A stretch of 63,340 nt of DNA, the filler included, from Perkinsus chesapeaki ATCC PRA-425 (Eukaryota > Protista > Perkinsozoa), in NCBI GenBank assembly GCA_013115145.1. It is 15 parts of 15 records of this genome, joined end to end, with 100 filler letters (N's around TTAATTAATTAA, not from the genome) between each part and the next. Parts side by side here need not be neighbours in the genome. Positions count along the whole stretch, not along the records: positions 1 to 22,790 come from JAAPAO010000572.1; 14 more parts are not named here. One strand, written 5' to 3'. Shown here piece by piece: positions 3,023 through 22,720 of this stretch. The position numbers were made by a program, and so were the translations under genes. The notes beneath the pieces were generated by a model. It was not told where the DNA came from. It ran no database searches and saw nothing but the letters and a program-made list of their open reading frames with translations. Position 1 is the first letter of the stretch. Each line of letters begins with the position of its first letter.

Positions 3023-3205
3023 TTACACGAATCGTGAATTGGCAGCCCTTGTGACAACAAATGTGTCACAGAACTGCACGTGCTTACACGAATCGTGAAT
3101 TGGCAGCCCTTGTGAAAACAAATGTGTCACAGAACTGCACGTGCTTACACGAATCGTGAATTGGCAGCCCTTGTGACAACAAATGTGTCACAGAACTGCA
3201 CGTGC
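3023..3205. repeat. 61-bp tandem repeat, 3 copies
   Basis: TTACACGAATCGTGAATTGGCAGCCCTTGTGACAACAAATGTGTCACAGAACTGCACGTGC starts at 3023, 3084 and 3145; near-identical. Confidence 0.95.
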
Positions 3206-4539: not shown

Positions 4540-7500
4540 GCAATTTCGTAGACCCGAGGGGAAACCACACGGACAATTCGACAAGGATGAAAGGGACGAC
4601 AGTACTTCCGTTGCTTGCCGAAGCGACGAACCAACCAAAGTTCGTCAACATCGGGGAGACGTCCGGAACGGAGCCGTGGCAAAGAGGGCACAGGCGTAAC
4701 CGAAACATCGGAATCGGTGACAAGATCAGCAAGCTCTTCTGGAGGACGGAAAATAGGGTCAACTGTAGGGTAAGGCCAAGCAGGGAAGGTAAACACCAAG
4801 GAATGAGGAGTTCGACCAGTTCGGCGAGTAACATCGGTGTTGAACATAGAGGTAGCTTGAGCAATGATTGTCTTGAAACTGCCGAAAGTCAAAGGGGTAA
4901 TGCGAGCGTAAGCGCTCATTGAACTCGATGTGCACGCTCAACCTTGCCATTGGACCAAGAACTCTCGACAGGAGAAGGCACCGAAGAAGCTCGCATCCAA
5001 TTTAACGTAGAGAGAAACTCAGCTGACGTAAATTGGGAGCCTCCATCATGGTAGACCCTCCGCGGAACCGTATTGAAGCACTCGAATACGGACCGCAACG
5101 AGGCGAAAGTAACTTGAGCGGTAGGCATAGATTTGGTGACACGAGTAAGAAGATAACCACTAAAGTTATCGACAAGGGTAACCCCATACAGCTCGTATTC
5201 CTTGTAAGGTCCCACAATATCCATATGAACACCTACCCAGGGGGAAAAGCACGGGGAAGCTCGGGGCCCGAGCCTCGGGCCTATCAGATAAGCCAGCATC
5301 CACTGCTGCTGACATGGTAACCTTACTCGTAGTCTACGAGTCGTAGAGCAAGTAGGACAAGAGCGAACAAAGTCACGACAAAACGCTCGCAAGGCAGGGA
5401 ATACAACGAGCTCACGGAGGCGGTCGTGTAGCGCGGGACTACCCTCATGCTGATGGAGGGCACGAGCAAGGCCAGTCAACAGCTGCTTATCATGGACCAC
5501 TAGACGCCCCTGTGCATCCCGCTCAGGCTGAACAGAGAGACTGCCAAGAAATGCAGTCAAACAGGAGTGGGTAGGTAAGGAAGGACCAACATCACGAGGA
5601 ACGCAATATTTGGGGATCCGACTCAGCGGATCCGCAATATTAGAGGCACTGTCGACATGGACAACAGTGATATCCAAACGAAGAGCGGTAGCCGTTTCCC
5701 GGAGAACGCGGAGTCGGTTCTCAACAAGGGTAGCATTGAGGCCCCCAACAGCGCGCCGATGTTTCTGAAGGTTACGAGTGACCCAAGAAACCGCACTGGA
5801 ATTATCACAACAAATGGTCAAGGGCAAACGGGAGGCCCAAGAAAGGGCACGAATGTATTTCTCGACGAGCTGCAAGCCCGTAACGAGCGCGTCGAGTTCG
5901 GCCAGGTTTATATGGCGATGATCGCCCGGCTTGCGAAGGTGCGTGCCATCTTCAACAATAACAAATCCAATGCGCAAGACAGAACCATAGGCGTACTTGC
6001 TACTATCAGTAAAAAGGACCCATGGATCTGTAGGACAGTACTGGCAGGACCCATGGATCTGTAGGACAGTACTGGCATGTCCCATGCGCAGTATCGCCGG
6101 ATTCGAGGAGAGCAGCTTGCAACGCGTGGCACGCGGAAAGTTGGTGATCATCCAAAGGGGAATCCCACTGCGCGGAAGTTCCATCATGGCGGACGCATGC
6201 CAGTCGTTTCAGGGCCGAAAAAGCAGCTCTAGGCCAGCCGACAACAGGATGGTGCGCCACATATTTTCCTGCCCACTGATGAATGCCACGGCGAGTGGGG
6301 ACCTCCAAAGTGGGAACGACACCTCGACGATGCCACTGCCCACTCGAATCACACTGCAAGCCTAGCACGCGGCTAGTAAGGAGGGGCTCGGGCTCCTTAG
6401 TAGGGAAGTTCCCTAAGGGAACCCGTTGGAGGACAAGATGTCCCGAACGTACTGCAGTAACTCCCGAGGGAGTACTATATCGTCGAGGTACTTGTCAAGC
6501 TTGCTGCGAACCGATCACAGAATACGATCGAGACATACCTCGAGGCATTTCGGAGAAATGCTGAGCCCGAAGAGCAAGCGCAACATGCGAAACCTTTCTG
6601 GGCGCTTCAAACGGAGGCGTAGACCTAGATAAAAAGTTTGTGGCTCAAAAACGCGTATTTGGAGAAACGCCTTTTTCAAATCCAGGAGGAAAAAATCTTC
6701 CGGATTGCCGGGGAAAGCACGCCAGCGCCGGAGGTGCTCGGGGCAGGCGACTGGGCCGTCGCGCAATTCGTTGGGTAGCTACGTATACGATCATTCAACC
6801 ATTTCAGATCGATGCAGGGCCGGACCGGAGTGGTGACCTTATGTTCTTGGGGTACTAAGACAAGTGGGCTGGTTGCCTGGAGGTCAGGAAGGTCAGTGGG
6901 TACCAGCCAACCTGCGGTAATCCATTCCTCAACAACCGACTGCCATTGACCGGCAAGGTGAGGAGGAAATTTCGACTCGACATTGTAACCCGGTATCATG
7001 ATGTGGCGAGACGGAACATCGTTGAGCCATTTCTGGCGAAGAATGAAATCGCTTGTCTCGACATTGTCATGATTTGACTTTGTTCATGATGTTGTCGAGT
7101 CGACAACATCATGAACAAAGTCATACCCACGAAGGCTCCCGATTTCGAGGGAAAGAGTCACAAACTTGAACCCCAACGGCCTGGGGCGGTTGGGGAGGGG
7201 ACAACGACAAACACACAGGCCGGGCCTGCGGAAGAGCAGAAAAATCCCGATGCAAAGGAAACGAATAGAATGGATGGCCATCGGAAGTAAAGGAGAGGGT
7301 AACTCCCCCATGGGCCCGAATGAAATCGAGCCCAAGTAGGCCACTAAGCCGTAGACCCGACACCAGGGGAAATGAGGACGCGATTCCCCAACGGGGTAAG
7401 GTAACACCGAGTATGTCTAATTGACCTGCGCAAAGCTGTACTGGCAGTTTGCCGGAAATGCCTTGTAGGCTGGAAAAGTGGCCATCAGAACGATCGGCAG

Positions 7501-7711
7501 ACGCGGTCGCTGTTGACGCGTCGAAGGTGCTCAGGGAGCAGCCGGAGTCTAAGAGAAAAAGACGGGTATCAACATCCTCAATTACAACTAACGGGCTCAC
7601 CTTAGACGGACGACTCGCCTTGGAGCAAACATTGGCCTTATGGCCACCTTCCCCACATTTGAAGCAGACCACCGGGCTACTGCTATCGCCTTGGAGTACA
7701 GACTGCATCAA
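4540..7711 (-). pseudogene. Gypsy gag-knuckle/pol, frameshifted
   Basis: CFKCGEGGHKANVC knuckle; LLDSGCS protease; LDLKKAFLQI, FGL and YLDD (~6478-6489) RT; LFTDSSKYAYG...NIADPLSR RNase H; H..H..CPTC, DIVGP, DGGSQF and ERAH integrase. Split over several frames. Confidence 0.92.
6016..6077. repeat. 31-bp tandem duplication that frameshifts pol
   Basis: GGACCCATGGATCTGTAGGACAGTACTGGCA occurs twice. Removing one copy joins HGTCQYCPTDPWV to LFTDSSK in frame. Confidence 0.9.
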
Positions 7712-8769: not shown

Positions 8770-10920
8770 ATGAATGAGATGGAACTGATAGCATCTCATG
8801 TAATGATTGACACTGATAATGCTACTGACCTAGAGATGATGATCGAGGCTCTCAAGCCTCAGTATAAGGGCCGAGAGTTTATGTAAGGTAGTTTATGCAG
8901 ATCGTGGGTGCTGTTCCAACGGTGAATACACTAAGTTGTTCGGTCGCATAAATGACAGTGCAGAGGTGGAATTAGATCTTTTTATTGGACACGTCGTATC
9001 GAGCAGTATGTTCGTGGATACCACCCTATCCGATCGTCGTTCTTCTCCGCACTACGCCAGTGTGTCTTCACTATCAGCCGTGGTGATGAAGAACTAGCAC
9101 TCAGTGCTATACGAAGTACTGGTAGGTGGGTGGAAACTCTTCACTGGAAAGCCTCAGCAGACGACAATACAGTCGTTACGTGCGCAAGGTGATTCCTGAA
9201 CCTATGTTAGTCCGAACTAGGCTGGAGGCCTTTCATAAGTACTACACTCGTTTGGATGCTCAGCTCAAGAATATGGGTGAAGGTTTTTTCTAGGAAACCC
9301 TAGCGTAGTTATCGTAGGTAGTTATCGTTGCGATAATCCGGCAAGAAAGGCCAGCTTCGGTCTCGATTATGAAGCCGACTGACACCAGTTCAAGCTCTTG
9401 AGCCACGTCGTTGAGGAAGGTGCTTTTGACATGGCTGATCCCAAGTTACTCGAAGAGAGTAATGTCAGCTCGTCTACAGGTCCTGTAGACCGATTCTCCG
9501 TTGGAACTCCTGTAGTACAGGAGTTCCAACGGATATCGAAGAATCGGATAGTGATACGGAGTCTATTTGGTTTGGAACTGAGGGTACAGATGAATTAGAT
9601 ATAGGTGAGACTCTCGGAGCAGAGGCTGAGGCGGATGTAGAGCCTACACAGCCATCGAGCTCAAGTCAGCAAGATGCATCTCGCATCTCGGATTTACGGC
9701 GCCAGTCAATCAAGTTCCGTGAGTCCATATTCAAGACCCAGAGTCCGTTATCGAACACACGCTCAGCAACGCTATTCCGTCAACTCGACGCCAAGTATCA
9801 ATTCTTAGATGCCGCAGATCGGGCTGTCCGCATTTGGGCAGAATTTGAGCTTCAGAGAAATGTGGATGCGACAGCCACATCTTCGAGAGCTGGTGCTTAG
9901 CCGGCCTCGGAAAGGATCGTGGGGCATACACCCCACTACTATCACGTGGGGCATAAAGGCTGTGCGTAGCCTCTCGAAAGAAAAAGACGCTGCCGATGCC
10001 TCAGGCGGGGTCCCACTATTCCGTCCGTAACTTCTCTGTTCGACGACGTAACTGGTGAATATAGTTTCGACCCTGAGCAGGGGAACCTCGACCGCGACTC
10101 GCGGTCCGCGAGGCTGAACATTCCGGAGTTCGGCATCCGAACAGGCATCCCCAAGTGTCGAAGTGCCGGGGTGTTCTAGCGGAGAATCTGTGTGGCGCTC
10201 GGTAGCTCTGAATGTTCAGAGTATGATGAAGAGGAAGGAGCTTCATATTACAAAGGGCGCCAAACGATGTGGAACGTGTGGCGTATCGTTCAACATACCC
10301 GACAGGCCACAAACACATCCGTGCATTCACGGTTACCGCATGTATCGCTACTGCCCACTGAGTCAGTGGCACTGACTACCCATAGCTCGACGAGTCGTCG
10401 ACGACGACTGGGTACTCGAGTTTGTCACTATACATCGAGCTTATCCTGCCGGGTAAGATTGAGGAATCTCAGAAAAGAAGGAGGGTTAAGGAGGGCTCAC
10501 TATGCTCTAGATGTGAGAAACCGTTATCCGCATGCCATTAACTGAACTTCAGTTACTGAAGGGGGTTACACAATATACTGGTGCCCTGATATGGACGGTC
10601 CTAGATGGTCATACGAAAAATGGAGGGACACGCCTGGCTTGGGGCCACGTGTTCTCGAAATGGTTCGCTTAAACGCCAGAAAGCATGATGCACGAGTGTT
10701 TGACGTCTTTTCTACTTATCCTGGATAAGTGGCAACAGTGGTAACACAACTCATGGATAAGTTATCCATGAGTTGTGTTACGCTAGTAACTGTTTCTATG
10801 TATCCTCTTCTCTTCCCTCTCTTTTTTCCCTCTTTTTCCCTCTTTTTCCCTTTCTTTTTCCCTTCTTCTTTCTTCCCTTTTTCTTTTCCCCCCTCTCTGG
10901 GTCAGGCTTTTCCCCCAGCC
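8770..10920 (+). mobile_element. Dada-like DDE transposon remnant, copy 1 (transposase pseudogene plus pyrimidine-rich 3' end)
   Basis: Manual translation across frameshifts: NEMELIASHVMIDTD...EALKPQYK, KVVYADRGCC (YADRGCC at 8894-8914), LDLF-(H)-WTRR (1-nt loss at 8984), GYHPIRSSFFSALRQCVF, YVRKVIPEP. After an internal deletion at ~9305 comes the same C-terminal region as ORF 19429-20913. These match my recollection of Dada/DUF6729-type transposase motifs. Confidence 0.7.
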
Positions 10921-10926
10921 AGCCAG

Positions 10927-10958
10927 GCGTGACAGGCAGGAATACTAACCGCTATACT
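10927..10958 (-). pseudogene. tRNA-Asp(GTC) fragment (D arm and anticodon arm)
   Basis: Reverse complement AGTATAGCGGTTAGTATTCCTGCCTGTCACGC matches tRNA-Asp at 22721-22790. Confidence 0.85.
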
Positions 10959-11272
10959 CTCGGAGTAAATGAAGATAAGTCGATTTGCAACAACGCGGGA
11001 AAATTTCCGTGCCAAGCCGTAGCATAAACACACATGATCACTTATTGTAAGATCGAAAATCCAACTCCACCAACTAGAGAGATCGTCCTAGTGCAGTAAA
11101 TGTACACCCCCGGTGCCCCCTGCTCAATGTTGGTCGAGTCTTCCTCGTGAAAAGCCTAAAAGGGCCTTGCGAGTGTGCCCGTGATTCACGCGTCATTGCA
11201 TCCTCTCAACATTGTTCAAGGGTAGGAGGGATCACTTACTATTTGACAGGTCTAAAGCTCATATTATCGTCA

Positions 11273-11362
11273 GGGGGACTAGGCTAGTCCGACTAGCTCA
11301 AATGGTAGAGCGTTCGCTTAGCAAGCGAGAGGCATCAGGATCGATGCCCGGATGATGCCCCA
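11273..11362 (+). pseudogene. tRNA-Ala(AGC) pseudogene
   Basis: Matches 21483-21555 but has a 14-nt insertion at the start of the A box and a rearranged 3' acceptor strand. Confidence 0.88.
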
Positions 11363-11617
11363 TTTTAAGCACTATAGATTTAAAATTGTCTACGGTACAG
11401 AGTGAACCGTGAACAACTTTTTTGGTTTTTTGGGGTCAGCAGGGGCAGCGTTAGCTCCTCTGTCCATTGGTGAAGAAATTCTGTGTATATCTGCACTAGT
11501 TATAGATCTACCTACCCCGGGAGATCGTGATGTGGGGGTCACTTAGCGCGCGTCAAAAAAATACGGAAAAATGCAGGGCGTGGGATTCGAACCTCCGAGG
11601 TTGCATCTGAATGACGT

Positions 11618-11865
11618 AGTACTAGTCCTAGTGTGGGTGACCTAGTACTAGTTACCAGTACTAGTCCTAGAGTGGGTGACCTAGTACTAGTTACTAGTAC
11701 CAGTCCTAGAGTGGGTGACCTAGTACCAGTTACTAGTACTAGTCCTAGAGTGGGTGACCTAGTACCAGTTACCAGTACTAGTCCTAGTGTGGGTGACCTA
11801 GTACTACTCCTAGTGTGGGTGACCCAGTACTAGTTACTAGTACTAGTCCTAGTGTGGGTGACCTA
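11618..11865. repeat. 39-bp minisatellite (~6 copies)
   Basis: GTGGGTGACCTAGTACTAGTTACCAGTACTAGTCCTAGA in tandem. The last unit is interrupted by the MITE and resumes at 12575. Confidence 0.95.
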
Positions 11866-12574
11866 CCGCTCGTTCAATAAACCTATTTTGGAACTAAGAA
11901 TCGATTTTGGAAACGATTTTGAAAAATCTTGTTCCAGGAACGGGTCCTGGAATCGATTCCGAACGTTTTCAGAAACGATTCTGAGTGCGTTCAAAAAGGC
12001 TCGCGTGCGATTCTGGAAGTGATTCTGAGCCGCCAGATTTCAAAATCGCTTTGACCGGTTCTAAACGTTTCGTTGCACGTGAAAGAGCGCACTCGCTACA
12101 GTAATTGAAATTCAATTATTGAATAAAGTCGAATAAAAGTTGTAGCGCAGGATCGAACTCTCAACCGTTGGGATTCGAAACTAAACTCCTAACCAATTAG
12201 ACTAGATTAACGAAAAAATTCTCTGAACCTGTGAGAATCCCCCAAATGCGTTAGGCAAATTGCCCAGAGTATCCTTAGACTAAGGATACTCTGGGCAATT
12301 GAAGCACTAAGGACCTTAGTGCTTCACGAGTTCGACTCCCGCACGTGACACTTTTATGTAGTTCACGAATTCGGGTTCTGGAAACATTTCTGGAATCGTT
12401 TTTGAAAATCGTGTCTATTGAACGCTGGTCAGAATCGTTGCCAGAATCGATTCCAAAAACGTGTTCCAATTCTCAAAATTGCGTTGATTGAACAGGTTCC
12501 CAAAATCGTTTTTCAAAATCGATTTTCAGAAACGATTCCAGAATCGCCTAAGCCATCTTTTATTGAACGAGCGG
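11866..12574. mobile_element. MITE with 16-bp TIRs and 3-bp TSD (PIF/Harbinger-like by TSD length)
   Basis: CCGCTCGTTCAATAAA (11866-11881) and TTTATTGAACGAGCGG (12559-12574). CTA duplicated at 11863-11865 and 12575-12577. Many subterminal GAATCGATT/AAACGATT motifs. Confidence 0.85.
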
Positions 12575-12863
12575 CTAGTACCAGTACATTGAGTACTAGG
12601 TCTTGCGCTTCGCTCCGCTATTAAAAGCGCTCGCCCGAACACATTTTTTACGTGTCTAAAGCTGGTGTTAATCTACAAAGTAATACTTGAAGTAGTACTG
12701 CGGTATACTCTGCAGTTATATGTAGTACTCGTACTGGATATTACTTATTAAGGGGGCGACCTGGTACTAGTATTATTATGGAAAAGGAAGAGAGGAAGTC
12801 TCAGTGATGATTGTCTTGCCACGCAGGAGGGTTCTGGAATGGAGGAGGAAACTATGCAGGTAA

Positions 12864-13115
12864 GAGTCCTTGGGAATTAGGAGGAGGGGTGACCTAGTAC
12901 TAGGATTATCAGTGCTTGGGAATTCTAATTATTATTGAGGGGGTGACCTAGTACTAGTATTATTAGTCCTTGGGAATTCTAATTATTATTGAGGGGGTGA
13001 CCTAGTACTAGTGTTATTAGTCCTTGGGAATTGAATTCTTTACTGGGGGGTGACCTAGTACTAGTATTATCAGGCCTTGGGAATTCTAATTATTATTGAG
13101 GGGGTGACCTAGTAC
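12864..13115. repeat. ~54-bp minisatellite (~4.5 copies)
   Basis: GAGGGGGTGACCTAGTACTAGTATTATTAGTCCTTGGGAATTCTAATTATTATT units. Confidence 0.9.
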
Positions 13116-13203
13116 TTAGTAGTGCTAGTAATTACTGAATTACTACAGTACCAATACTCGTTCCAGGGGTGCTTGGTAGTTTAATGGTACTGTAGTACTG
13201 GTG

Positions 13204-13303: not shown

Positions 13304-13709
13304 TGCAAGTACCATTACTCGTACTAGTACGGTTTAGAATAGTTTATAATTTCATTTATTTCGTCTTGAATTGTGGATACCACAATTTCGCAATTGACTA
13401 GTGTCGTCGGTAATTTAACAGATATAATGGTAGAGTTGAAGCGAAGTAAGTTGTTAAAGGGGAGTATGTAAAGGTAAACTCTTGTGCAGGTATCGATAGT
13501 TGTAAAGGAACGATTGAAATGCATGGAGTTCCAACCCGAAAACGCAAGAGAGAAAGTGTCAGTGATGATTGTTTTACCCGTAAGGCAACAGTCAGCCCCC
13601 AGCGCGTTGAGTTCGAAGGAAGTCCGCCCCCGGGTAAGACGGGAGATAACTTATTACTAGTAAAATGTTATGGATTGTAGTTAAATTCGGGTTTTCGTAG
13701 AACTAGTAC

Positions 13710-14060
13710 GGGTAGTGATCGTAGAACTTCCAGTACTAGTAACCGGTAGTGATAGTAGTACTTCCAGTACTAGTAACCGGTAGTGATAGTAGAACTTCCA
13801 GTACTAGTAACCGGTAGTGATAGTAGTACTTCCAGTACTAGCAACCGGTAGTGATAGTAGTACTTCCAGTACTAGTAACCGGTAGTGATAGTAGTACTTC
13901 CAGTACTAGTAACCGGTATTGATAGTAGTACTTCCAGTACTAGTAACCGGTAGTGATAGTAGTACTTCTAGTACTAGTAACCGGTAGTGATAGTAGTACT
14001 TCCAGTACTAGTAACCGGTAGTGATAGTACTTCCAGTACTAGTAACCGGTAGTGATAGTA
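13710..14060. repeat. 34-bp minisatellite (~10 copies)
   Basis: CCAGTACTAGTAACCGGTAGTGATAGTAGTACTT; AACCGG recurs at 13741, 13775 and 13809. Confidence 0.95.
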
Positions 14061-14212: not shown

Positions 14213-16928
14213 TTGGAAATCAATTTTTACATGCCAGTTAAAGAAGGCCATACCCGTGTTGTATGCGACATATGCGGAAAGGAGTATTGGAAGTATGCTC
14301 GATACAAGCACGCGTGCTACAGGAATCCTAATAGGGTTCAATGCCCTATATGTGGAGAATTCTTCGTAGCGCTGCACCGACACATCAATCGGGAGGTATG
14401 TAAAAGAAATGCACAAAAGAAGAAAGCCCAAGAAGGTGGTCCATATTTATAGTATTTATCGGGTTCCGATGCGCTCCCTTTCAGCTCGCAAATCGGAACC
14501 CATTACCCCTTTTGGCGAACATATCACCCCTCTTGAGGAACTGATTCAAACTTCTGAGGAACCAAATGAGCCTTCTAAGGAACTTATTACGCCTTTTGGT
14601 AAAGCGGCTCGTGATGCTGTTGCATTGCAGGTGGACGTTTCGTCTACTACAGCCTCTGCTCCTGTCATTACTACCCCACCTGGGGAATCTATTACCCCAC
14701 CTGGGGAAGGTACTACCCCCCCTGAGGAATCTATTACTTCTCCTGAGGAATCTATTACTCCATCTGGGGAATCTATTACCCCACCTGGGGAAGGTACTAC
14801 CCGCCCTGAGGAATCTATTACTCCACCTGGGGAATCTATTACTCCACCTGGGGAATCTATTACCCCACCTGGGGAAGGTACTACCCCCCCTGAGGAATCT
14901 ATTACTCCACCTGGGGATATTACCCCACCTGGGGAATCTATTACCCCTCTTGAGGATCCTATTGAGTCTCTCGAAGAACCTATTGAAACAACTACGGTTG
15001 CTATTCCTACGTCTTCTAGTAGTGCGCCACGATTGGATCGACTCGTATCAAGTATCCCTCGTGCTACTCCAGTCGGTGGGGCCACCATTACGTCATTCGG
15101 TGCTCCTAGCGGTGGACCTGATGTGGATTCGATCGTCATACCAATTTATCCGCGTACATTGCTAAGTGTACATGGGACTTTCGATGGCTGGCGAATTGGT
15201 GGTGGGGCGGGGCCAATTAAAGGTGTTGATGGTACGCTGGTGTGCATCGCGACGGAACCATATGTTCTGATGGCGAAAGCTAATCAGTTCGACAATCTTC
15301 GCTTTTGCGATGGCCTTTACAATTATGGAATGACCGCCGTGTGGAATGATAACTTTGGAACTTCGGTTGTGCTTGGAACTATATCTGTTTCTACCAGAGT
15401 ACTCGTCCAGGTGTTGGATGACATATATCCGCCAGATGAGTATCTTCTGTTATGCCGTTATGGACAGAAGCTGAAAATTATGCGGGAGCTTATCAATTAC
15501 TATGATTCCTTAGTGCGGGTTGACCATCGAACACTATCAAATGAATCTAGTCTGGTCAAAACAATTTACGATATAGGCCGCAACTTCGATGACACTGCGA
15601 TTTGCTTACTGACCACCACCAACCCCAATGTTAAGCCGTGGAATTTGCTATCAGTTCTTGGAGGAGCGAACTCCGGTTCATTAAGATGGTCCGAAAAGGT
15701 GTATATTCCTGGTGCAGTATCGTGCGAGACTAATGTTGTTTTATATCCCCGATTGGTGCATTTTCTTAAGGGTGTTATGGGTACCAAGAAATATGTCCCT
15801 TTAAAATACCAAGCTTTCAGGAAGCTTGTAAATGATACCAAAAAACTTTTGCGGAAGATGCGTGAAGCTCCCGAACGGTGGTTATATGGTTATCGCCTTG
15901 AATATAGCCTTAGCATTGAAGCTAAAGAAGGTGTGAAATTAAGTACCGCTTACAATGCTGTTGGGCCCCGGTTATCACTGCATTATCATCCTGATGTTGC
16001 CGTATGCCGTGTTGATCCCAAAGAGTACATGAGCTACATTCAACTGATGTTGGATGTAGCGGATCAGTCCGGCGTTTATTCTGGACCGAACGCCGAGCCA
16101 TTGAGTAAGAGGGCAAAAGCATTCGCAGCTTTTATGATTAATACTCTGGGGAACACTTCCCCTCATATCCAATCTCTTGAACGTGAAGGTAAATTCGTCT
16201 ACTATGAGTACCTAAAGTCTTTCGCGATGACTAGGGGGAAGCTGCATAACCCGGATCCAGACCATCTTCAACCAGATAGAGATGAATGTGTGGATATGAG
16301 AAACAACGTCAAGTGGCGAAAGCCACTAACTAAAGCGGATACCCCTTTGTCAGTGGCCTACTCGATTAAAAGGTTTGGTCCTGTTGGTAAGACCAAGTGT
16401 TCTAAAAGCCATCCCAGCTTCTTCTCGGCTATGAGAGAAATTTGGGATGCCTTTTCCGAACATTGGAGAGATAGAGTTGTATTAACGAATGGGAGGAACG
16501 ATACCCCAGAATCTGACCCCTTCAAAGATATTCCTGGTGGTTATCCGGAAGCGTATGGCACAATCTCACGGCATTTTCAACACCCATCCAGGAAACGGGC
16601 GCGTTCAAAACACGCATTCTGCGGAAGGGTCGAGAGAGGGTGCAAATTTAAGGAGACCACAGCTGCAAAGGAGGGGAAATCCACTGCGCCCGCTTCTGCT
16701 GCCATTACTGCTGCTGTCAATATTGCTGCTGCTGATGCGAGGAGGGATGATGAGGTAGAGGATGAGGTAGAGGATAAGGGAGAGGATGAGGTAGAGGAAG
16801 ATTTTGGGATATGGATATGCTGGAATGGATACTCGGCCAGTGAGCTGCGACGATTGATCAAGATCTTTTTCCTACTTTTTTCCTACTTTTTCAGGATGCA
16901 GAGCTTGCGATACCCCCTCTTCAGTTAA
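14213..16928 (+). CDS. Uncharacterised zinc-finger / Pro-Thr-Glu repeat / unknown-domain protein (spliced; 5' exons further upstream)
   Basis: Exon 14213-14435 follows an AG acceptor and encodes CDIC...HAC and CPIC...H...C fingers. A 49-nt GT...CTTTCAG intron (14436-14484) joins it in frame to the uninterrupted 839-codon ORF. Acidic tail. Confidence 0.75.
14685..14950 (+). repeat. 21-bp coding tandem repeat (ESITPPG-type heptads)
   Basis: GAATCTATTACYCCACCTGGG variants within the long ORF. Confidence 0.95.
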
Positions 16929-17319
16929 GGCTGCAGTGGAGAATGAATAAGGCATTGGATGCTCGCGCGTCAGCCACGTACAGCCATGGATGTGCTAGTG
17001 CCTCAAAAAGGTGTTAAGTACTATATTTTAGTGTTCCAGGTGATCGCGAAGTTGATGAATGAGTGTGTCACACACTGTGTGTGAGTGTATTAATATGCGT
17101 CTGTGTTGTATGCGTATCATCTTATTTATTAGTTTCTCAGATTATACAGATACATGGAATTGTGTTTCAAAATGTCCAAATGTACTACCATTAGTTGCAC
17201 ATACTTGCACAATTTGGTGCGCAACTAATCTGAAGCATCTAGTTCCGTAATAAGCTGCTGTGGGGCTACAACTGGCTTAAGATAGAGTTTAAAATGCGCA
17301 AACAGTTGACCCTCAACTT

Positions 17320-17690
17320 TACTAGGTCACCCATTCACTGCAGTACAAGTTCCCTACATTACCAGTATCAAGCCAGGACTATCCTGGGCGGGTACTAGGT
17401 CACCCATTCGCTGTAGTACAAGTTCCCTACTTTTTAACCAGTATCAAGCCAGAACTATCCTGGGCGGGTACTAGGTCACCCATTCACTGTAGTACAAGTT
17501 CCCCACATTACATTACCAGTATCAAGCCAGAAATATCCTGGGCGGGTAGTACGTCACCCATTCACTGTAGTACAAGTTCCCTACTTTCTAACCAGTATCA
17601 ATCCAGAACTATCCTGGGCGGGTACTAGGTCACCCATTGGACTGCAGTACAAGTTCCCTACTTAACCAGTATCAAGCCAGAACTATCCCC
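17320..17690. repeat. 73-78-bp minisatellite (5 copies)
   Basis: Units start TACTAGGTCACCC at 17320, 17393, 17469, 17547 (variant) and 17623. Confidence 0.95.
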
Positions 17691-17714
17691 TAAGAATCTC
17701 CTAAGAATCCGTAA

Positions 17715-17887
17715 GGTGCCATTGGTTAGGATTGAGGTCTGTCGTTCTGAAGGTCAAGGTTCGATTCTCGGTGAGAAATTGAGAAAATGCCAACGGAAGA
17801 AAGACTGTCGTCCCTCGGTAGAATATGCAAGCTGGTTCGGATGGACATTCTACATAGTTTCTGCCCGACAATGCTCCAAATAATAAA
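17715..17887. other. tRNA-derived (A/B-box-like) segment with conserved hairpin, copy 1
   Basis: Near-identical to 22548-22720. GGTTCGATTC B-box-like motif. Does not fold as a cloverleaf. Confidence 0.55.
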
Positions 17888-17904
17888 TTCCACGGCCGAG
17901 AATT
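17888..17904 (-). pseudogene. tRNA-Asp 3' fragment
   Basis: TTCCACGGCCGAGAATT, identical to 22721-22737 and in the same flanking context. Confidence 0.8.
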
Positions 17905-19415: not shown

Positions 19416-21103
19416 CGCGTGCGGGACAGTGCAGAAGTCCTACAAGTCATCCAGAATGAGCGCCAACCTTGTAAACGCAGTTGTCCATGAGCTAGCGGCT
19501 CACTGGAACCGGCGTGCACTTCAAAAGATTGGCAAGGACGCATGTCCTATCACAGATCTCCGCGATTGGACAGATTTTCAAGGCACCATGGGCAGTATGT
19601 TGCCGAACCAACAGCAAGGAGGTCTATCCGCCGGTAGTTATCGTAGCGATAATCCAGCAAGCAACGCCAGCTTCGGTCTCGATTATGCAGCTGACTTACA
19701 CCAGTTCAAGCTCTTGAGCCACGTCGTTGAGGAAGGTGCATTTGACATGGCTGATCCCAAGTTGCTCAAAGGGGGTAATGTAAGCTCGTCTACAGGAGCT
19801 CCAACGGATGTCGGAGAAACGGATAGTGATACGGAGTCTATCTGGTTCGAAACTCAGGATATAGATGAATTAGATATAGGTGAGACTCTCGGAGCAGTGG
19901 CTAAGGCGCATGTGGAGCCTTCACAGCCATCGAGCTCAAGTCAGCAAAATGCATCTCGCATCTCGGATTTACGGCGCCAGTCAATCAAGTTCCGTGAGTC
20001 CATATTCAAGACCCAAAGTCCGTTATCGAACACACGCTCAGCAACACTATTTCGTCAACTCGATGCGAAGTATCAATCCTTAGATGCCGCAGATCAGGCT
20101 GTCCGCATCTGGGCAGAATTTGAGCTTCAGAGAAATGTTGATGTGATGGCCACATCTTCGAGAGCTGGTGCCTTACCGGCCTCGGAAAGGATCGTGAAGA
20201 CTAGTATCACGTGGTGCATAAAGGCTGTGCGTAGCCTTTCGAAAGAAAAAGACGCTGCCGATGTCTCAGGCGGGGGTCCTACCATTCCGGCCGTAACTTC
20301 TCTGTTCGACGACGTAGCTGGTGAATATAGCTTCAACCCTGAGCCGGGGAATCTCGACCGCGAGGCTGGCCATTCCGAAGAGGCATCCCCAAGTGTCGAA
20401 GTGCCGGTTTGTTCTAGCGGAGAATCTGTCTGGCGCTCGGTTGCTCTGGATGTTCAGAGTATGATAAAGAAAAAGGAGCTACATATTCCAAAGGGCGTCA
20501 AACGATGTGGGACGTGTGGCGTACCTTTCAACATACCCGACAGGCCACAAACACACCCGTACATTCAAGGTTACCGCATGTATCGCTACTGCCCACTGAC
20601 TACCCATAGCTCAACGACTGGGTACTTGAGTTTGTCACAGTACATCGAGCTTATACTGCCGGGTAAGATTGAGGAATCCCAGAAAAGGAAGAGGGTTAAG
20701 GAGGGCTCACTTTGCTCAAGATGTGAGAAACCGTTATCCGCTGGGCACATGCCATTAACTGAAGGGGGATATACAGTATACTGGTGCCCTGATATGGACG
20801 GCTCTAGATGGTCATACGAAAAATGGAGGGACACGCCTGGCTTGGGGCCACGCGTTCTCGAAATGGTTCGCTTGAATGCCGGTGGAAGGACGAAAAAACG
20901 CCAGAAAGCATGATGTACGGGTGTTTGACGTCTTTTTTACATATCCATGCGCTGTGTTACGCTAGTGACTGTTTCTATGTACCCTCTTCTCTTCCCTCTC
21001 TTTTTTCCCTCTTTTTCCCTCCTTTTTTCCCTTCTCCTTCTTTCTTCCCTTTCTCTTCCCTTTTTCTTTTCCCCCCTCCCTGGGTCAGGCTTTTCCCCCA
21101 GCC
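19416..21103 (+). mobile_element. Dada-like transposon remnant, copy 3 (5'-truncated)
   Basis: Contains the 494-codon ORF, then a pyrimidine tract and CCCCCAGCC abutting the tRNA-Asp 5' half. Confidence 0.7.
19429..20913 (+). CDS. C-terminal half of a Dada-type transposase with two CCHC-type zinc motifs
   Basis: Open 494-codon frame. HELAAHWNRR near the start; CGTC...H...YRYCP and CSRC...GH...YWCP; basic tail. In copy 1 the homologous region is linked to DDE-core motifs. No catalytic core in this copy. Confidence 0.65.
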   Translation: MQKSYKSSRMSANLVNAVVHELAAHWNRRALQKIGKDACPITDLRDWTDFQGTMGSMLPNQQQGGLSAGSYRSDNPASNASFGLDYAADLHQFKLLSHVVEEGAFDMADPKLLKGGNVSSSTGAPTDVGETDSDTESIWFETQDIDELDIGETLGAVAKAHVEPSQPSSSSQQNASRISDLRRQSIKFRESIFKTQSPLSNTRSATLFRQLDAKYQSLDAADQAVRIWAEFELQRNVDVMATSSRAGALPASERIVKTSITWCIKAVRSLSKEKDAADVSGGGPTIPAVTSLFDDVAGEYSFNPEPGNLDREAGHSEEASPSVEVPVCSSGESVWRSVALDVQSMIKKKELHIPKGVKRCGTCGVPFNIPDRPQTHPYIQGYRMYRYCPLTTHSSTTGYLSLSQYIELILPGKIEESQKRKRVKEGSLCSRCEKPLSAGHMPLTEGGYTVYWCPDMDGSRWSYEKWRDTPGLGPRVLEMVRLNAGGRTKKRQKA

Positions 21104-21148
21104 CTCCTGCGTGACAGGCAGGAATACTAACCTCTATACTACCGCGGA
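21104..21148 (-). pseudogene. tRNA-Asp(GTC) 5' 45 nt
   Basis: TCCGCGGTAGTATAGAGGTTAGTATTCCTGCCTGTCACGCAGGAG, identical to the intact gene where they overlap. Confidence 0.9.
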
Positions 21149-21482
21149 ACTAATATTTTATTTTTCGTCTCGGAGTGAATGAAGATAAGTCGATTTGCAA
21201 CAACGCGGGAAAATTTCCGTGCCAAGCCGTAGCATAAACACACATGATTACTTATTGTAAGAGCGAAAATCCAACTCCACCAACTAGGGAGATCGTCCTA
21301 GTGCAGAGAATGCACACCCCCGGTGCCCCCTGGTCAATGTTGGTCGAGTCTTCCTCGTGAAAAGCCTGAACGGGCCTTGCGAGTGTGCCCGTGATTCACG
21401 CGTCATTGCACCCTCTCAACATTGTTCAAGGGTAGGAGGGATCACTTGCTATCTGACAGGTCTAAAGCTCATATTATCGTCA

Positions 21483-21555
21483 GGGGGACTAGCTCAAATG
21501 GTAGAGCGCTCGCTTAGCAAGCGAGAGGCACCGGGATCGATGCCCGGGTTCTCCA
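21483..21555 (+). tRNA. tRNA-Ala (anticodon AGC)
   Basis: 73 nt; acceptor GGGGGAC/GTTCTCC with G3:U70; anticodon arm CTCGC-TTAGCAA-GCGAG; A and B boxes; followed by TTTT. Confidence 0.97.
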
Positions 21556-22525
21556 TTTTGAGCATTATAAATTCAAAATTGTCTACGGTTGCGTGAACAC
21601 AATAGCATCACATTCTTAAACTTAGCTGCGCACTCTCCTCCATTTCGGTAGCTCTGGGTGCGCATACCCGTAACCTCTATCCTGCCGGATTTTATTCTCC
21701 TAACGCGCACTTGCTTATCGCTATGCCGTCTCTTTTGCGCACTGTACTACACTGTAGTGTAGACAGTGACTGTAGCGCCTCAGCCATCACATCACACCAA
21801 CTGTATCATCACGCCTCCCGTAATTTCGAATTCAACCGACCTTGGACCAGCTTAACTCTCTCGTACACACAACCCTCCGTAATCGACCACGGTGCGATAC
21901 TATCAATTCAACTCAATCGGGAAGAAAACGGTACGACAAGCAATAAGTGTAGTGTGACATGCCAGCTTGGAAAAGCCTCGTAAACTGGAAGTGAATCACC
22001 GCATCAGCATGCCTTCATTCAGCGATATTCACCTTCGCACAACCTTTGATGGCGGTTCCTATCGTCGTAGGAATGGTGACACGGTGACAGCAATTTATAC
22101 TAAAATAAATTATATATTAATTATTCTTTACAATACTTGATTGAATCACCAGTTGCCATCCTGTCCATGCCCCCCAGCTTTTCTGCATTCAAATTTACTG
22201 TGAGGGTGGAATCATGACGGTGATTGAACGTCTGAAAACGGATGGGCTGTCACCACTTTGCTCGAGAAGTAGTCGTGGGAAATCTGGTATGGCAATGAGT
22301 TTTTCGGTGCGCGCGGGAATTTAATGCTACTGAACGTGCTTCAACATCGACTATTATCTGCCACCGTAGCCTCTCAGGATCAAGGCAAATACATGATCCT
22401 CTTGCTTTCGGAAGCCGCTAGGCAGTCCCAGCAACGGCCTTCATGAGAAGAGAGTAAAATTTGTGACTCGCCGGCAGTAGAAGTTGTGGATTTCAGAACT
22501 GCTTTTTAGTACCTCACAAACTGAG

Positions 22526-22720
22526 GGAGTACTGGACCAGTACTACTGGTGCCATTGGTTAGGATTGAGGTCTGTTGTTCTGAAGGTCAAGGTTCGATTC
22601 TCGGTGAGAGATTGAGGAAATGCGAACGGAAGAAAGACTGTCGTCCCTCGGTAGGATAGGCAAGCTGGTTCGGATGGCCATCCTACATAGTTTCTGCCCG
22701 ACAATGCTCCAAATAAGGAA
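22526..22720. other. tRNA-derived (A/B-box-like) segment with conserved hairpin, copy 2
   Basis: TGGTGCCATTGG A-box-like and GGTTCGATTC B-box-like motifs; paralog of 17715-17887. Confidence 0.55.

Follow-up and report, generated by a model that had tools for sequence, protein, structure and literature searches.

We analysed a 63,340-nt stretch of the genome of Perkinsus chesapeaki ATCC PRA-425 (assembly GCA_013115145.1; hereafter, the window), composed of 15 parts of 15 records, and read its first part, positions 1-22790 (JAAPAO010000572.1). This part contains a segmental duplication on the same contig, with copy A at 9318-11400 and copy B at 19633-21590 (+ strand), ~10.3 kb apart and ~92% identical outside gaps. 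Copy B retains an open reading frame (ORF) of 485-494 a.a. (19429-20913), which has no Pfam domain, and an intact tRNA-Ala(AGC) gene (21483-21555); copy A is broken. Beyond copy A, 11870-12700 is the window's copy of a tRNA-like repeat family resembling short interspersed nuclear elements (SINE-like), which has at least 10 partial copies in the genome, including those on contigs C2944 (L017) and C864 (L018). An exhaustive scan, combined with direct reading of 9300-12500, located three sites, two in copy A (site 1, 9472-9533; site 2, 10714-10781) and one within the SINE-like copy (site 3, 12258-12326), where a single 8-bp site has been replaced by two neighbouring palindromes with a 1-nt centre (odd palindromes). 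These structures are very probably footprints left by a cut-and-paste, hAT-superfamily transposon on its excision.

The arms measure 9 and 18 bp at site 1, 8 and 20 bp at site 2, and 21 and 13 bp at site 3, and the two palindromes of each site have an 8-mer in common (CTACAGGA, CTTATCCA and TCCTTAGT, respectively). At 6/6 centres, the central base is the complement of a terminal base of that 8-mer. The left palindrome of site 1 (9472-9490, GTCTACAGG-T-CCTGTAGAC, 9-bp arms), found by the palindrome scan and without a counterpart in the paralog, joins the left flank, which holds bases 1-7 of CTACAGGA, to its own 9-nt inverted copy, the left palindromic (P) tract; between them lies the centre T9481, complementary to base 8 (A). 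This palindrome is separated by 6 nt from the right one (9497-9533, within the part 9490-9533; TCCGTTGGAACTCCTGTA-G-TACAGGAGTTCCAACGGA), with 18-bp arms around the centre G9515 (complement of base 1, C). At site 2, the left palindrome (10714-10730, ACTTATCC-T-GGATAAGT, 8-bp arms around T10722, the complement of A) is followed by a 10-nt junction filler, GGCAACAGTG, and then by the right palindrome (10741-10781, within the part 10731-10781), which has 20-bp arms around G10761 (complement of C). The palindromes of site 3 abut: the left one (12258-12300) has 21-bp arms around A12279 and the right one (12300-12326) 13-bp arms around A12313, both centres being the complement of T, and T12300 is common to the left arm and to the 13th pair of the right arm. 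Counting the centre base, the P tracts at sites 1, 2 and 3 are 10, 9 and 22 nt long on the left, and 19, 21 and 14 nt long on the right. An earlier note on this DNA had described inverted copies of both flanks with a 1-nt complementary spacer at these sites. The scan and the reading agree on that structure and on the three 8-mers, as well as on the arms of 9+18, 8+20 and, for the left of site 3, 21 bp; the right arm of site 3 has 13 bp rather than the 12 given, and the spans had been drawn slightly too narrow.

The long right inverted copies of sites 1 and 2 resume past exactly 7 nt of flank (9534-9550 and 10782-10794), 18-20 nt from the apex. At site 1, CCGATTCT (9490-9497) is an inverted copy of AGAATCGG (9543-9550), which lies past the skipped ATATCGA (9534-9540), and the right copy therefore extended at least 32 nt into the flank. 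At site 2, AACAGT (10733-10738) pairs with ACTGTT (10789-10794) past the skipped GCTAGTA, an extension that we regard as tentative. The resumed copies (7-8 nt at site 1, 6 nt at site 2) are the top two gapped extensions among 48 long palindromes. The skip may stem from slipped re-priming in the fill-in, from a pair of nicks at a distance of 7 nt or from a deletion by slippage at a later time.

Copy B, which is free of scars, shows the empty state of sites 1 and 2 as well as of six short scars. At site 1, it reads ...GCTCGTC TACAGGAG CTCC..., with CTACAGGA present once, and copy A has 41 additional bases; at site 2, copy B again has one 8-mer, and copy A has 46 additional bases. The absence of both structures from the paralog, as the earlier note had it, is thus borne out. 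Site 3 belongs to another repeat family, and its relatives on contigs C2944 and C864 read ...CAGAGTAT CCTTAGTG CTTC..., with one 8-mer and 41 bases fewer. The insertions at the three sites (41, 46 and 41 nt) are inverted copies of the adjoining flanks. Where copy A differs from its paralog, the inverted copies bear the copy-A-specific bases and were therefore made locally, each from its own flank. An 8-bp target-site duplication has been kept at the empty donor site, with one 8-mer in the empty paralogs and both copies in the scars. In total, copy A carries nine such insertions in ~2 kb, most of them of 14 nt, and copy B carries none.

The double palindromes are not an assembly artefact. A 224-nt contig spanning site 1 (9394-9617) was present with 0 differences in the public runs X1 and X3 (study P1) and X5 (study P2). 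The depth of site 1 in the public-run contigs was the same as that of its flanks, and the paralog was recovered apart, as the form that skips 41 bases. The short scars in 10091-10561 were likewise matched with 0 differences, and at flank-like depth, by contigs assembled from independent runs of both studies, and site 2 was covered by contigs of X1 and X3 only (study P1). Chance cannot explain the structures either, because a palindrome with 18-bp arms is expected ~3e-7 times per 22.8 kb, and because positions 1-22790 have 47 odd palindromes (arms of at least 7 bp, the threshold for all such counts) as against 0 with directly adjoining arms and 2 with arms 2 nt apart (~1.4 of each expected). 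In single-stranded folding, each site yields two neighbouring hairpins, with z-scores of -9.5 to -11.5.

Within a class of scars that occurs genome-wide, the three sites form the long tail. We surveyed the window together with ~250 kb from 30-odd other places of the genome, amounting to 269 kb (268.6 kb after the removal of overlapping loci, ~272 kb before) of the 41.7-Mb assembly. In the short form of the scar, an 8-mer b1..b8 has become b1..b7, followed by the reverse complement of b1..b8 and then b2..b8, giving 22 nt. There were 70 exact 22-nt scars in ~272 kb and 67 in 268.6 kb (0.25 per kb), equivalent to some 10,000 in the whole genome, provided that the sample is representative. Against the 70 scars for k=8, the same sample contained 0 equivalent exact scars for k=6, 7, 9, 10, 11 and 12, and it contained 0 even-palindrome scars (k=5-11) and 0 scars with a 2-nt offset. 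Scars with 0, 1, 2 and 3 mismatches numbered 70, 57, 50 and 71, versus 0, 0, 2 and 28 in a Markov control; a flat series is expected from long, steady accumulation and decay. Three quarters of the odd palindromes belong to such scars, and the density of odd palindromes varies from 0 to 24 per 10 kb.

The centre rule was evaluated in short scars selected only on a 6-mer core in direct, inverted and direct order (85 scars, 170 centres). The centre was the complement of the terminal base of the 8-mer in 150 of the 170 (~88%), the original base in 8 and another base in 12, and the 20 non-complementary centres are what later point mutation would leave. The rule is unforced in six two-sided scars with non-overlapping palindromes, sites 1 and 2 among them, and there it held at all 12 centres; both centres of site 3, whose arms share one base, also obey it. 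The 8-mers follow the consensus nTnnnnAc: T2/A7 was found in 51%, versus a background of 26.6% (p=1e-9), and G1/C8, at 37%, was enriched as well (p=5e-4).

Ten two-sided scars were found altogether, and the seven beyond sites 1-3 have arms of 6-11 bp. At the junctions of these seven, there is homology of 0-2 nt, untemplated filler or a repeat copied from a template (L036), typical of end joining. Nine of the ten, all retrieved by a common 6-mer core, obey the complement rule on both sides, and the outcome that the earlier note named as a refutation, most double palindromes breaking this rule, did not occur. The same note had predicted a short-tailed distribution of arm lengths, and indeed most arms are 6-11 bp long with a maximum of 21-24, and only 8 arms in 269 kb, five of them in the window, reach 13 bp or more. 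The longest perfect arm seen, 24 bp, belongs to a one-sided odd palindrome at 7075-7123 (centre G7099), inside the remnant of a long terminal repeat (LTR) retrotransposon with an integrase ORF (4916-6187) and a zinc-knuckle ORF (7121-7711); the second copy of its duplication appears to have been deleted.

The assignment to the hAT superfamily, in which we have high confidence, is made because an 8-bp duplication, a hairpin with a 1-nt offset and the target consensus constitute the signature of hAT excision. Footprints of Ac/Ds combine an 8-bp duplication with P nucleotides centred on the complement of the element-adjacent base (PMC5873905), and the odd centres found here fit that definition. 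Likewise, the scar consensus conforms to the target preference of Hermes, 5'-nTnnnnAn-3' (PMC10368747). The genome also encodes intact hAT transposases: the hAT dimerisation domain PF05699 has at least 11 matches, in open frames of up to ~530 a.a. (521 and 530 a.a.), and the ORF of contig C18 aligns to the Hermes transposase, including PTRWNST, at the position of W318, and the S-E-x-x-FS motif. In Hermes, the W318 tryptophan positions the flanking DNA (PMC5499845). The resident transposases are remote from Hermes, aligning only in the motifs and the C-terminal domain (E ~1e-4). In the Atlas, the cluster closest to the hAT ORF is from Basidiomycota and that closest to the 485-a.a. ORF is from Bacillariophyta, both weak matches; searches for light-harvesting proteins, Fungal_trans and elicitin gave none, and the genome was read as that of a non-photosynthetic eukaryote. 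A separate observation is that C2874:9535-9859 consists of two adjoining matches to L005, 1840-2081 (96%) and 3097-3201 (93%), and its arrangement suggests a Ds-like element derived from the C18 hAT element by internal deletion.

Among known systems, Ac/Ds in S. cerevisiae is similar in its 8-bp duplication, complement-centred P tracts, arms of up to 20 nt and frequent joining by microhomology (PMC5873905); the longest palindrome arm given there, citing Lazarow 2012, is 20 nt. Compared with the yeast footprints, those found here are natural and fixed in a genome rather than selected revertants, and their arms reach 21-24 bp (at least 32 with the 7-nt skip). The dominance of one 22-nt product here, with no detectable enrichment of near-tip footprints, may be a further difference. 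Yeast Ac/Ds footprints were reportedly studied by Weil and Kunze in 2000, Yu et al. in 2004 and Lazarow et al. in 2012. Ac/Ds in plants and Candida albicans shares the hairpin model and the centre that complements the adjacent base, but its P tracts do not exceed ~3 nt and the hairpins are opened near the apex (PMC5873905), whereas opening at a distance of at least 8 nt is the rule here. Hermes is alike in its 8-bp duplication and its nTnnnnAn preference (PMC10368747), and the resident transposase has the corresponding PTRWNST and SE..FS motifs. V(D)J coding joints (RAG, Transib) resemble the scars in the hairpin formed on the flank (the coding end), its off-centre opening on the 3' side and the palindromic additions. 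However, RAG/Transib hairpins have no 1-nt offset and yield even palindromes with P tracts of 1-4 nt, and Transib duplicates 5 bp; no even scar (k=5-11) was present here. The kind of feature is known, and what is unusual is the tract length, the dominance of the 22-nt product and the abundance in a natural genome. No published account of such scars, natural and genome-wide, came up in our literature search, which is not proof that there is none.

Several observations weigh against the hAT assignment. In 269-300 kb, no element was found between copies of an 8-bp duplication in searches for terminal inverted repeats (TIRs) of 12 nt and 10 nt (up to 2 mismatches each) next to perfect 8-bp repeats; the matches were at chance level or in tandem repeats only. 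Nor was any site seen that was occupied in one copy and scarred in another, and the link to a particular hAT element is circumstantial. A TIR search on the hAT contigs gave no convincing termini, and one candidate resident element, L029:5341-7423, was rejected, being without a transposase and in accord with chance. By self-search of the assembly, hAT elements appear to be low-copy, as against the ~10,000 exact scars extrapolated. The transposases of Mutator-like elements (MULEs), which also make flank hairpins, outnumber those of hAT, with at least 25 matches. Classical short hAT footprints are not enriched, unlike in plants and Candida, and a simple hairpin model does not predict the 7-nt skip found on the right at sites 1 and 2. 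The survey is a non-random ~0.6% of the genome, and all genome-wide extrapolations assume that it is representative. Finally, part of the support is general background on hAT excision: Zhou et al. (2004) are reported to have described the 1-nt cleavage offset and the flank hairpin of hAT elements, Hermes included, and yeast genetics by Yu et al. (2004) reportedly implicates the Mre11 nuclease, Sae2 and Pso2 in the repair of Ds hairpins.

The alternative that survives best retains the excision and hairpin mechanism and replaces the agent with a MULE making 8-bp duplications or with an undescribed family. The greater number of MULE transposase domains, in open frames of up to ~1,368 a.a., speaks for it, as does the failure to catch a resident hAT element at a scar, and Muta1 is a MULE with flank hairpins and duplications of 8 or 9 bp (PMC5499845). 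Nevertheless, MULE footprints in general carry duplications of 9-10 bp and excision is mostly precise, more than 90% so for Muta1 in yeast (PMC5499845), whereas the duplication here is strictly 8 bp, with 0 scars of 9 or 10 bp, although MULE genes are present. The odd palindromes with the 1-nt offset and the complement rule are those of Ac/Ds (PMC5873905), nTnnnnAc matches the preference of Hermes (PMC10368747), and a KDZ search of the genome, run without a positive control, gave no match. We therefore consider a non-hAT agent quite unlikely. Several of the MULE domain matches lie in open frames of 900-1,368 a.a. on short contigs, and MULE DNA transposons are, judging from these frames, probably active or recently active.

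Another possibility is that the scars are by-products of a genome-wide programme run by a host-controlled or domesticated hAT-like nuclease, or the work of a hyperactive, tiny non-autonomous element. The high, clustered density would suit this idea: 9 scars in ~2 kb of the dead paralog versus none in its intact twin, scar pairs 30-32 nt apart, and the wide range in odd palindrome density. The lack of any resident element in 269 kb would suit it as well. However, purifying selection on the intact copy (485-a.a. ORF and tRNA gene) together with local hAT hopping accounts for both the asymmetry and the clustering, and the flat decay series is compatible with a slow, neutral build-up of scars. No hAT gene here has any link to a function in the host, and such a programme is very unlikely.

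Template switching in replication or repair (fold-back priming or quasi-palindrome mutagenesis) at spontaneous breaks would require no transposon. Template switches can produce inverted copies of neighbouring sequence, and fillers with templated repeats occur at some junctions (L036). This explanation leaves unaccounted for the exact 8-bp duplication everywhere, the complement rule, nTnnnnAc and the mirror copies of both flanks; fold-back priming, moreover, needs loops of at least 3 nt, as against the invariant 1-nt centre. A template-switch mutation would consist of a single inverted copy without a target duplication, whereas each site here has two mirror-image copies and an 8-bp duplication, and the view of the earlier note that one switch could hardly produce them is upheld. 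Template switching is thus highly improbable. The weakest alternative, a sequencing or assembly artefact such as chimeric amplification products, has in its favour that inverted chimeras are known from some amplification methods and that the assembly is fragmented (3,544 contigs), but its probability is negligible given the two-study support, the flank-like depth and the separately recovered paralog described above, and given that decayed scars form a smooth series (70/57/50/71), indicating evolutionary age.

Returning to hAT excision, the sites themselves display a single ancestral 8-mer, two inverted copies templated by the flanks, odd centres that follow the complement rule and a strict length of 8 bp. 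Insertion of the element duplicated the 8-bp target, as the one ancestral 8-mer and the two copies in each scar show. By established hAT chemistry, the transposase on excision nicks the strand bearing the 5' end of the element, 1 nt into the flank, and the 3'-OH of the flank attacks the opposite strand, closing a flank hairpin whose apex is the complement of the element-adjacent base of the duplication; this is visible here in the 1-nt centres that follow the complement rule. A host nuclease may then open both hairpins 3' of the apex, because after a 5'-side nick and fill-in the centre would keep its original base, as it rarely does. If the nick falls far from the tip, at 8 to more than 20 nt (usually at least 8), opening would leave long, self-complementary 3' tails, the P tracts. 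As the 8-mer is present in both flanks, the tails could pair with each other over 8 nt, and their annealing, flap trimming and fill-in would generate the 22-nt scar as the majority product. At sites 1-3, the ends would instead have been ligated across a filler or 0-1 nt of homology, so that both long P tracts were kept as two unequal palindromes. The earlier note had proposed two hairpins opened at different distances and then joined, and the templating by each site's own flank, the single ancestral 8-mer and the complement rule support this.

Classical short footprints, in which only two central bases are flipped, numbered 3 against 6.8 expected, and the 22-nt form 79 against 13; opening far from the apex is therefore the norm. 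The MRX-Sae2 complex cuts the 5'-terminated strand ~15-25 nt from a blocked end. By analogy, the most likely host machinery would be an endonucleolytic cut of the MRX/Sae2 type on the 5'-terminated strand, followed by end joining.

Besides the three sites, the window contains several short scars. Exact 22-nt scars lie at 10091-10112 (8-mer ACCGCGAG; a net insertion of 14 nt relative to the paralog), 10355-10376 (CCACTGAC), 10387-10408 (TCGACGAC), 10540-10561 (AACTGAAG), 11276-11297 (GGACTAGC) and 12103-12124 (AATTGAAT), the last of which shares the SINE-like copy with site 3. A decayed scar with 2 mismatches is found at 10121-10142 (TTCCGAAC), also as a 14-nt insertion relative to the paralog. 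The scars within 10091-10142 and 10355-10408 are paired, with starts 30-32 nt apart, which hints at local re-insertion or insertion hot spots. In copy A, the paralog of tRNA-Ala(AGC) (11276-11355) has the scar at 11276-11297 in its 5' end; its 3' end is also altered, and neither ARAGORN nor Rfam calls it any longer. Judged by its sequence, it is a tRNA gene copy inactivated by the footprint.

A further short paralogous segment with tRNA-like sequence (TGCCATTGGTTAGGATTGAGGTC...GGTTCGATTCTCGG) was found at 17700-17900 and 22550-22720, and the copy near 22529-22550 is directly preceded by an exact short scar. Minisatellite arrays at 11617-11865, 12886-13121 and 13702-14060 (+ strand) and at 17320-17688 (- strand) are inverted about a repeat-containing ORF of 839 a.a. 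Their unit GGTGACCTAGTAC occurs 11 times on the + strand in 11636-13115 and 4 times on the - strand in 17319-17634; the array at 13702-14060 is without GGTGACCTAGTAC and has a related ACTAGTA-type unit. The inverted GGTGACCTAGTAC arrays had suggested a candidate transposon around the 839-a.a. ORF (14409-16928), in which no Pfam domain was recognised. The arrays may represent the subterminal repeats of a so far unrecognised transposon, or a mere satellite family.

The three sites constitute direct natural evidence that both donor flanks existed as covalently closed hairpins that were processed independently, a state so far shown mainly with engineered Ac/Ds or Hermes reporters. With the abundant 22-nt scars added, the genome becomes a large natural data set from which to read the place of hairpin opening (3' side, at distances from 8 to over 20 nt) and the route of joining (8-nt annealing through the duplication, or direct joining). 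For annotation, each scar adds 14 to 46 nt, shifts reading frames and creates stable hairpins, and in the window scars have broken one tRNA gene copy and one protein-coding paralog. We also entertain, as a speculation that is probably wrong, that hairpins are not opened near the apex in this genome at all, so that every hAT excision would write a micro-palindrome of 22 nt or longer, perhaps under a host-tolerated or domesticated hAT activity that prefers silent or repeated DNA. If true, tens of thousands of scars, including decayed ones, would be a major undescribed source of indels, pseudogenisation and short hairpins. The scars also register a past hAT activity that would be invisible in the resident copy numbers.

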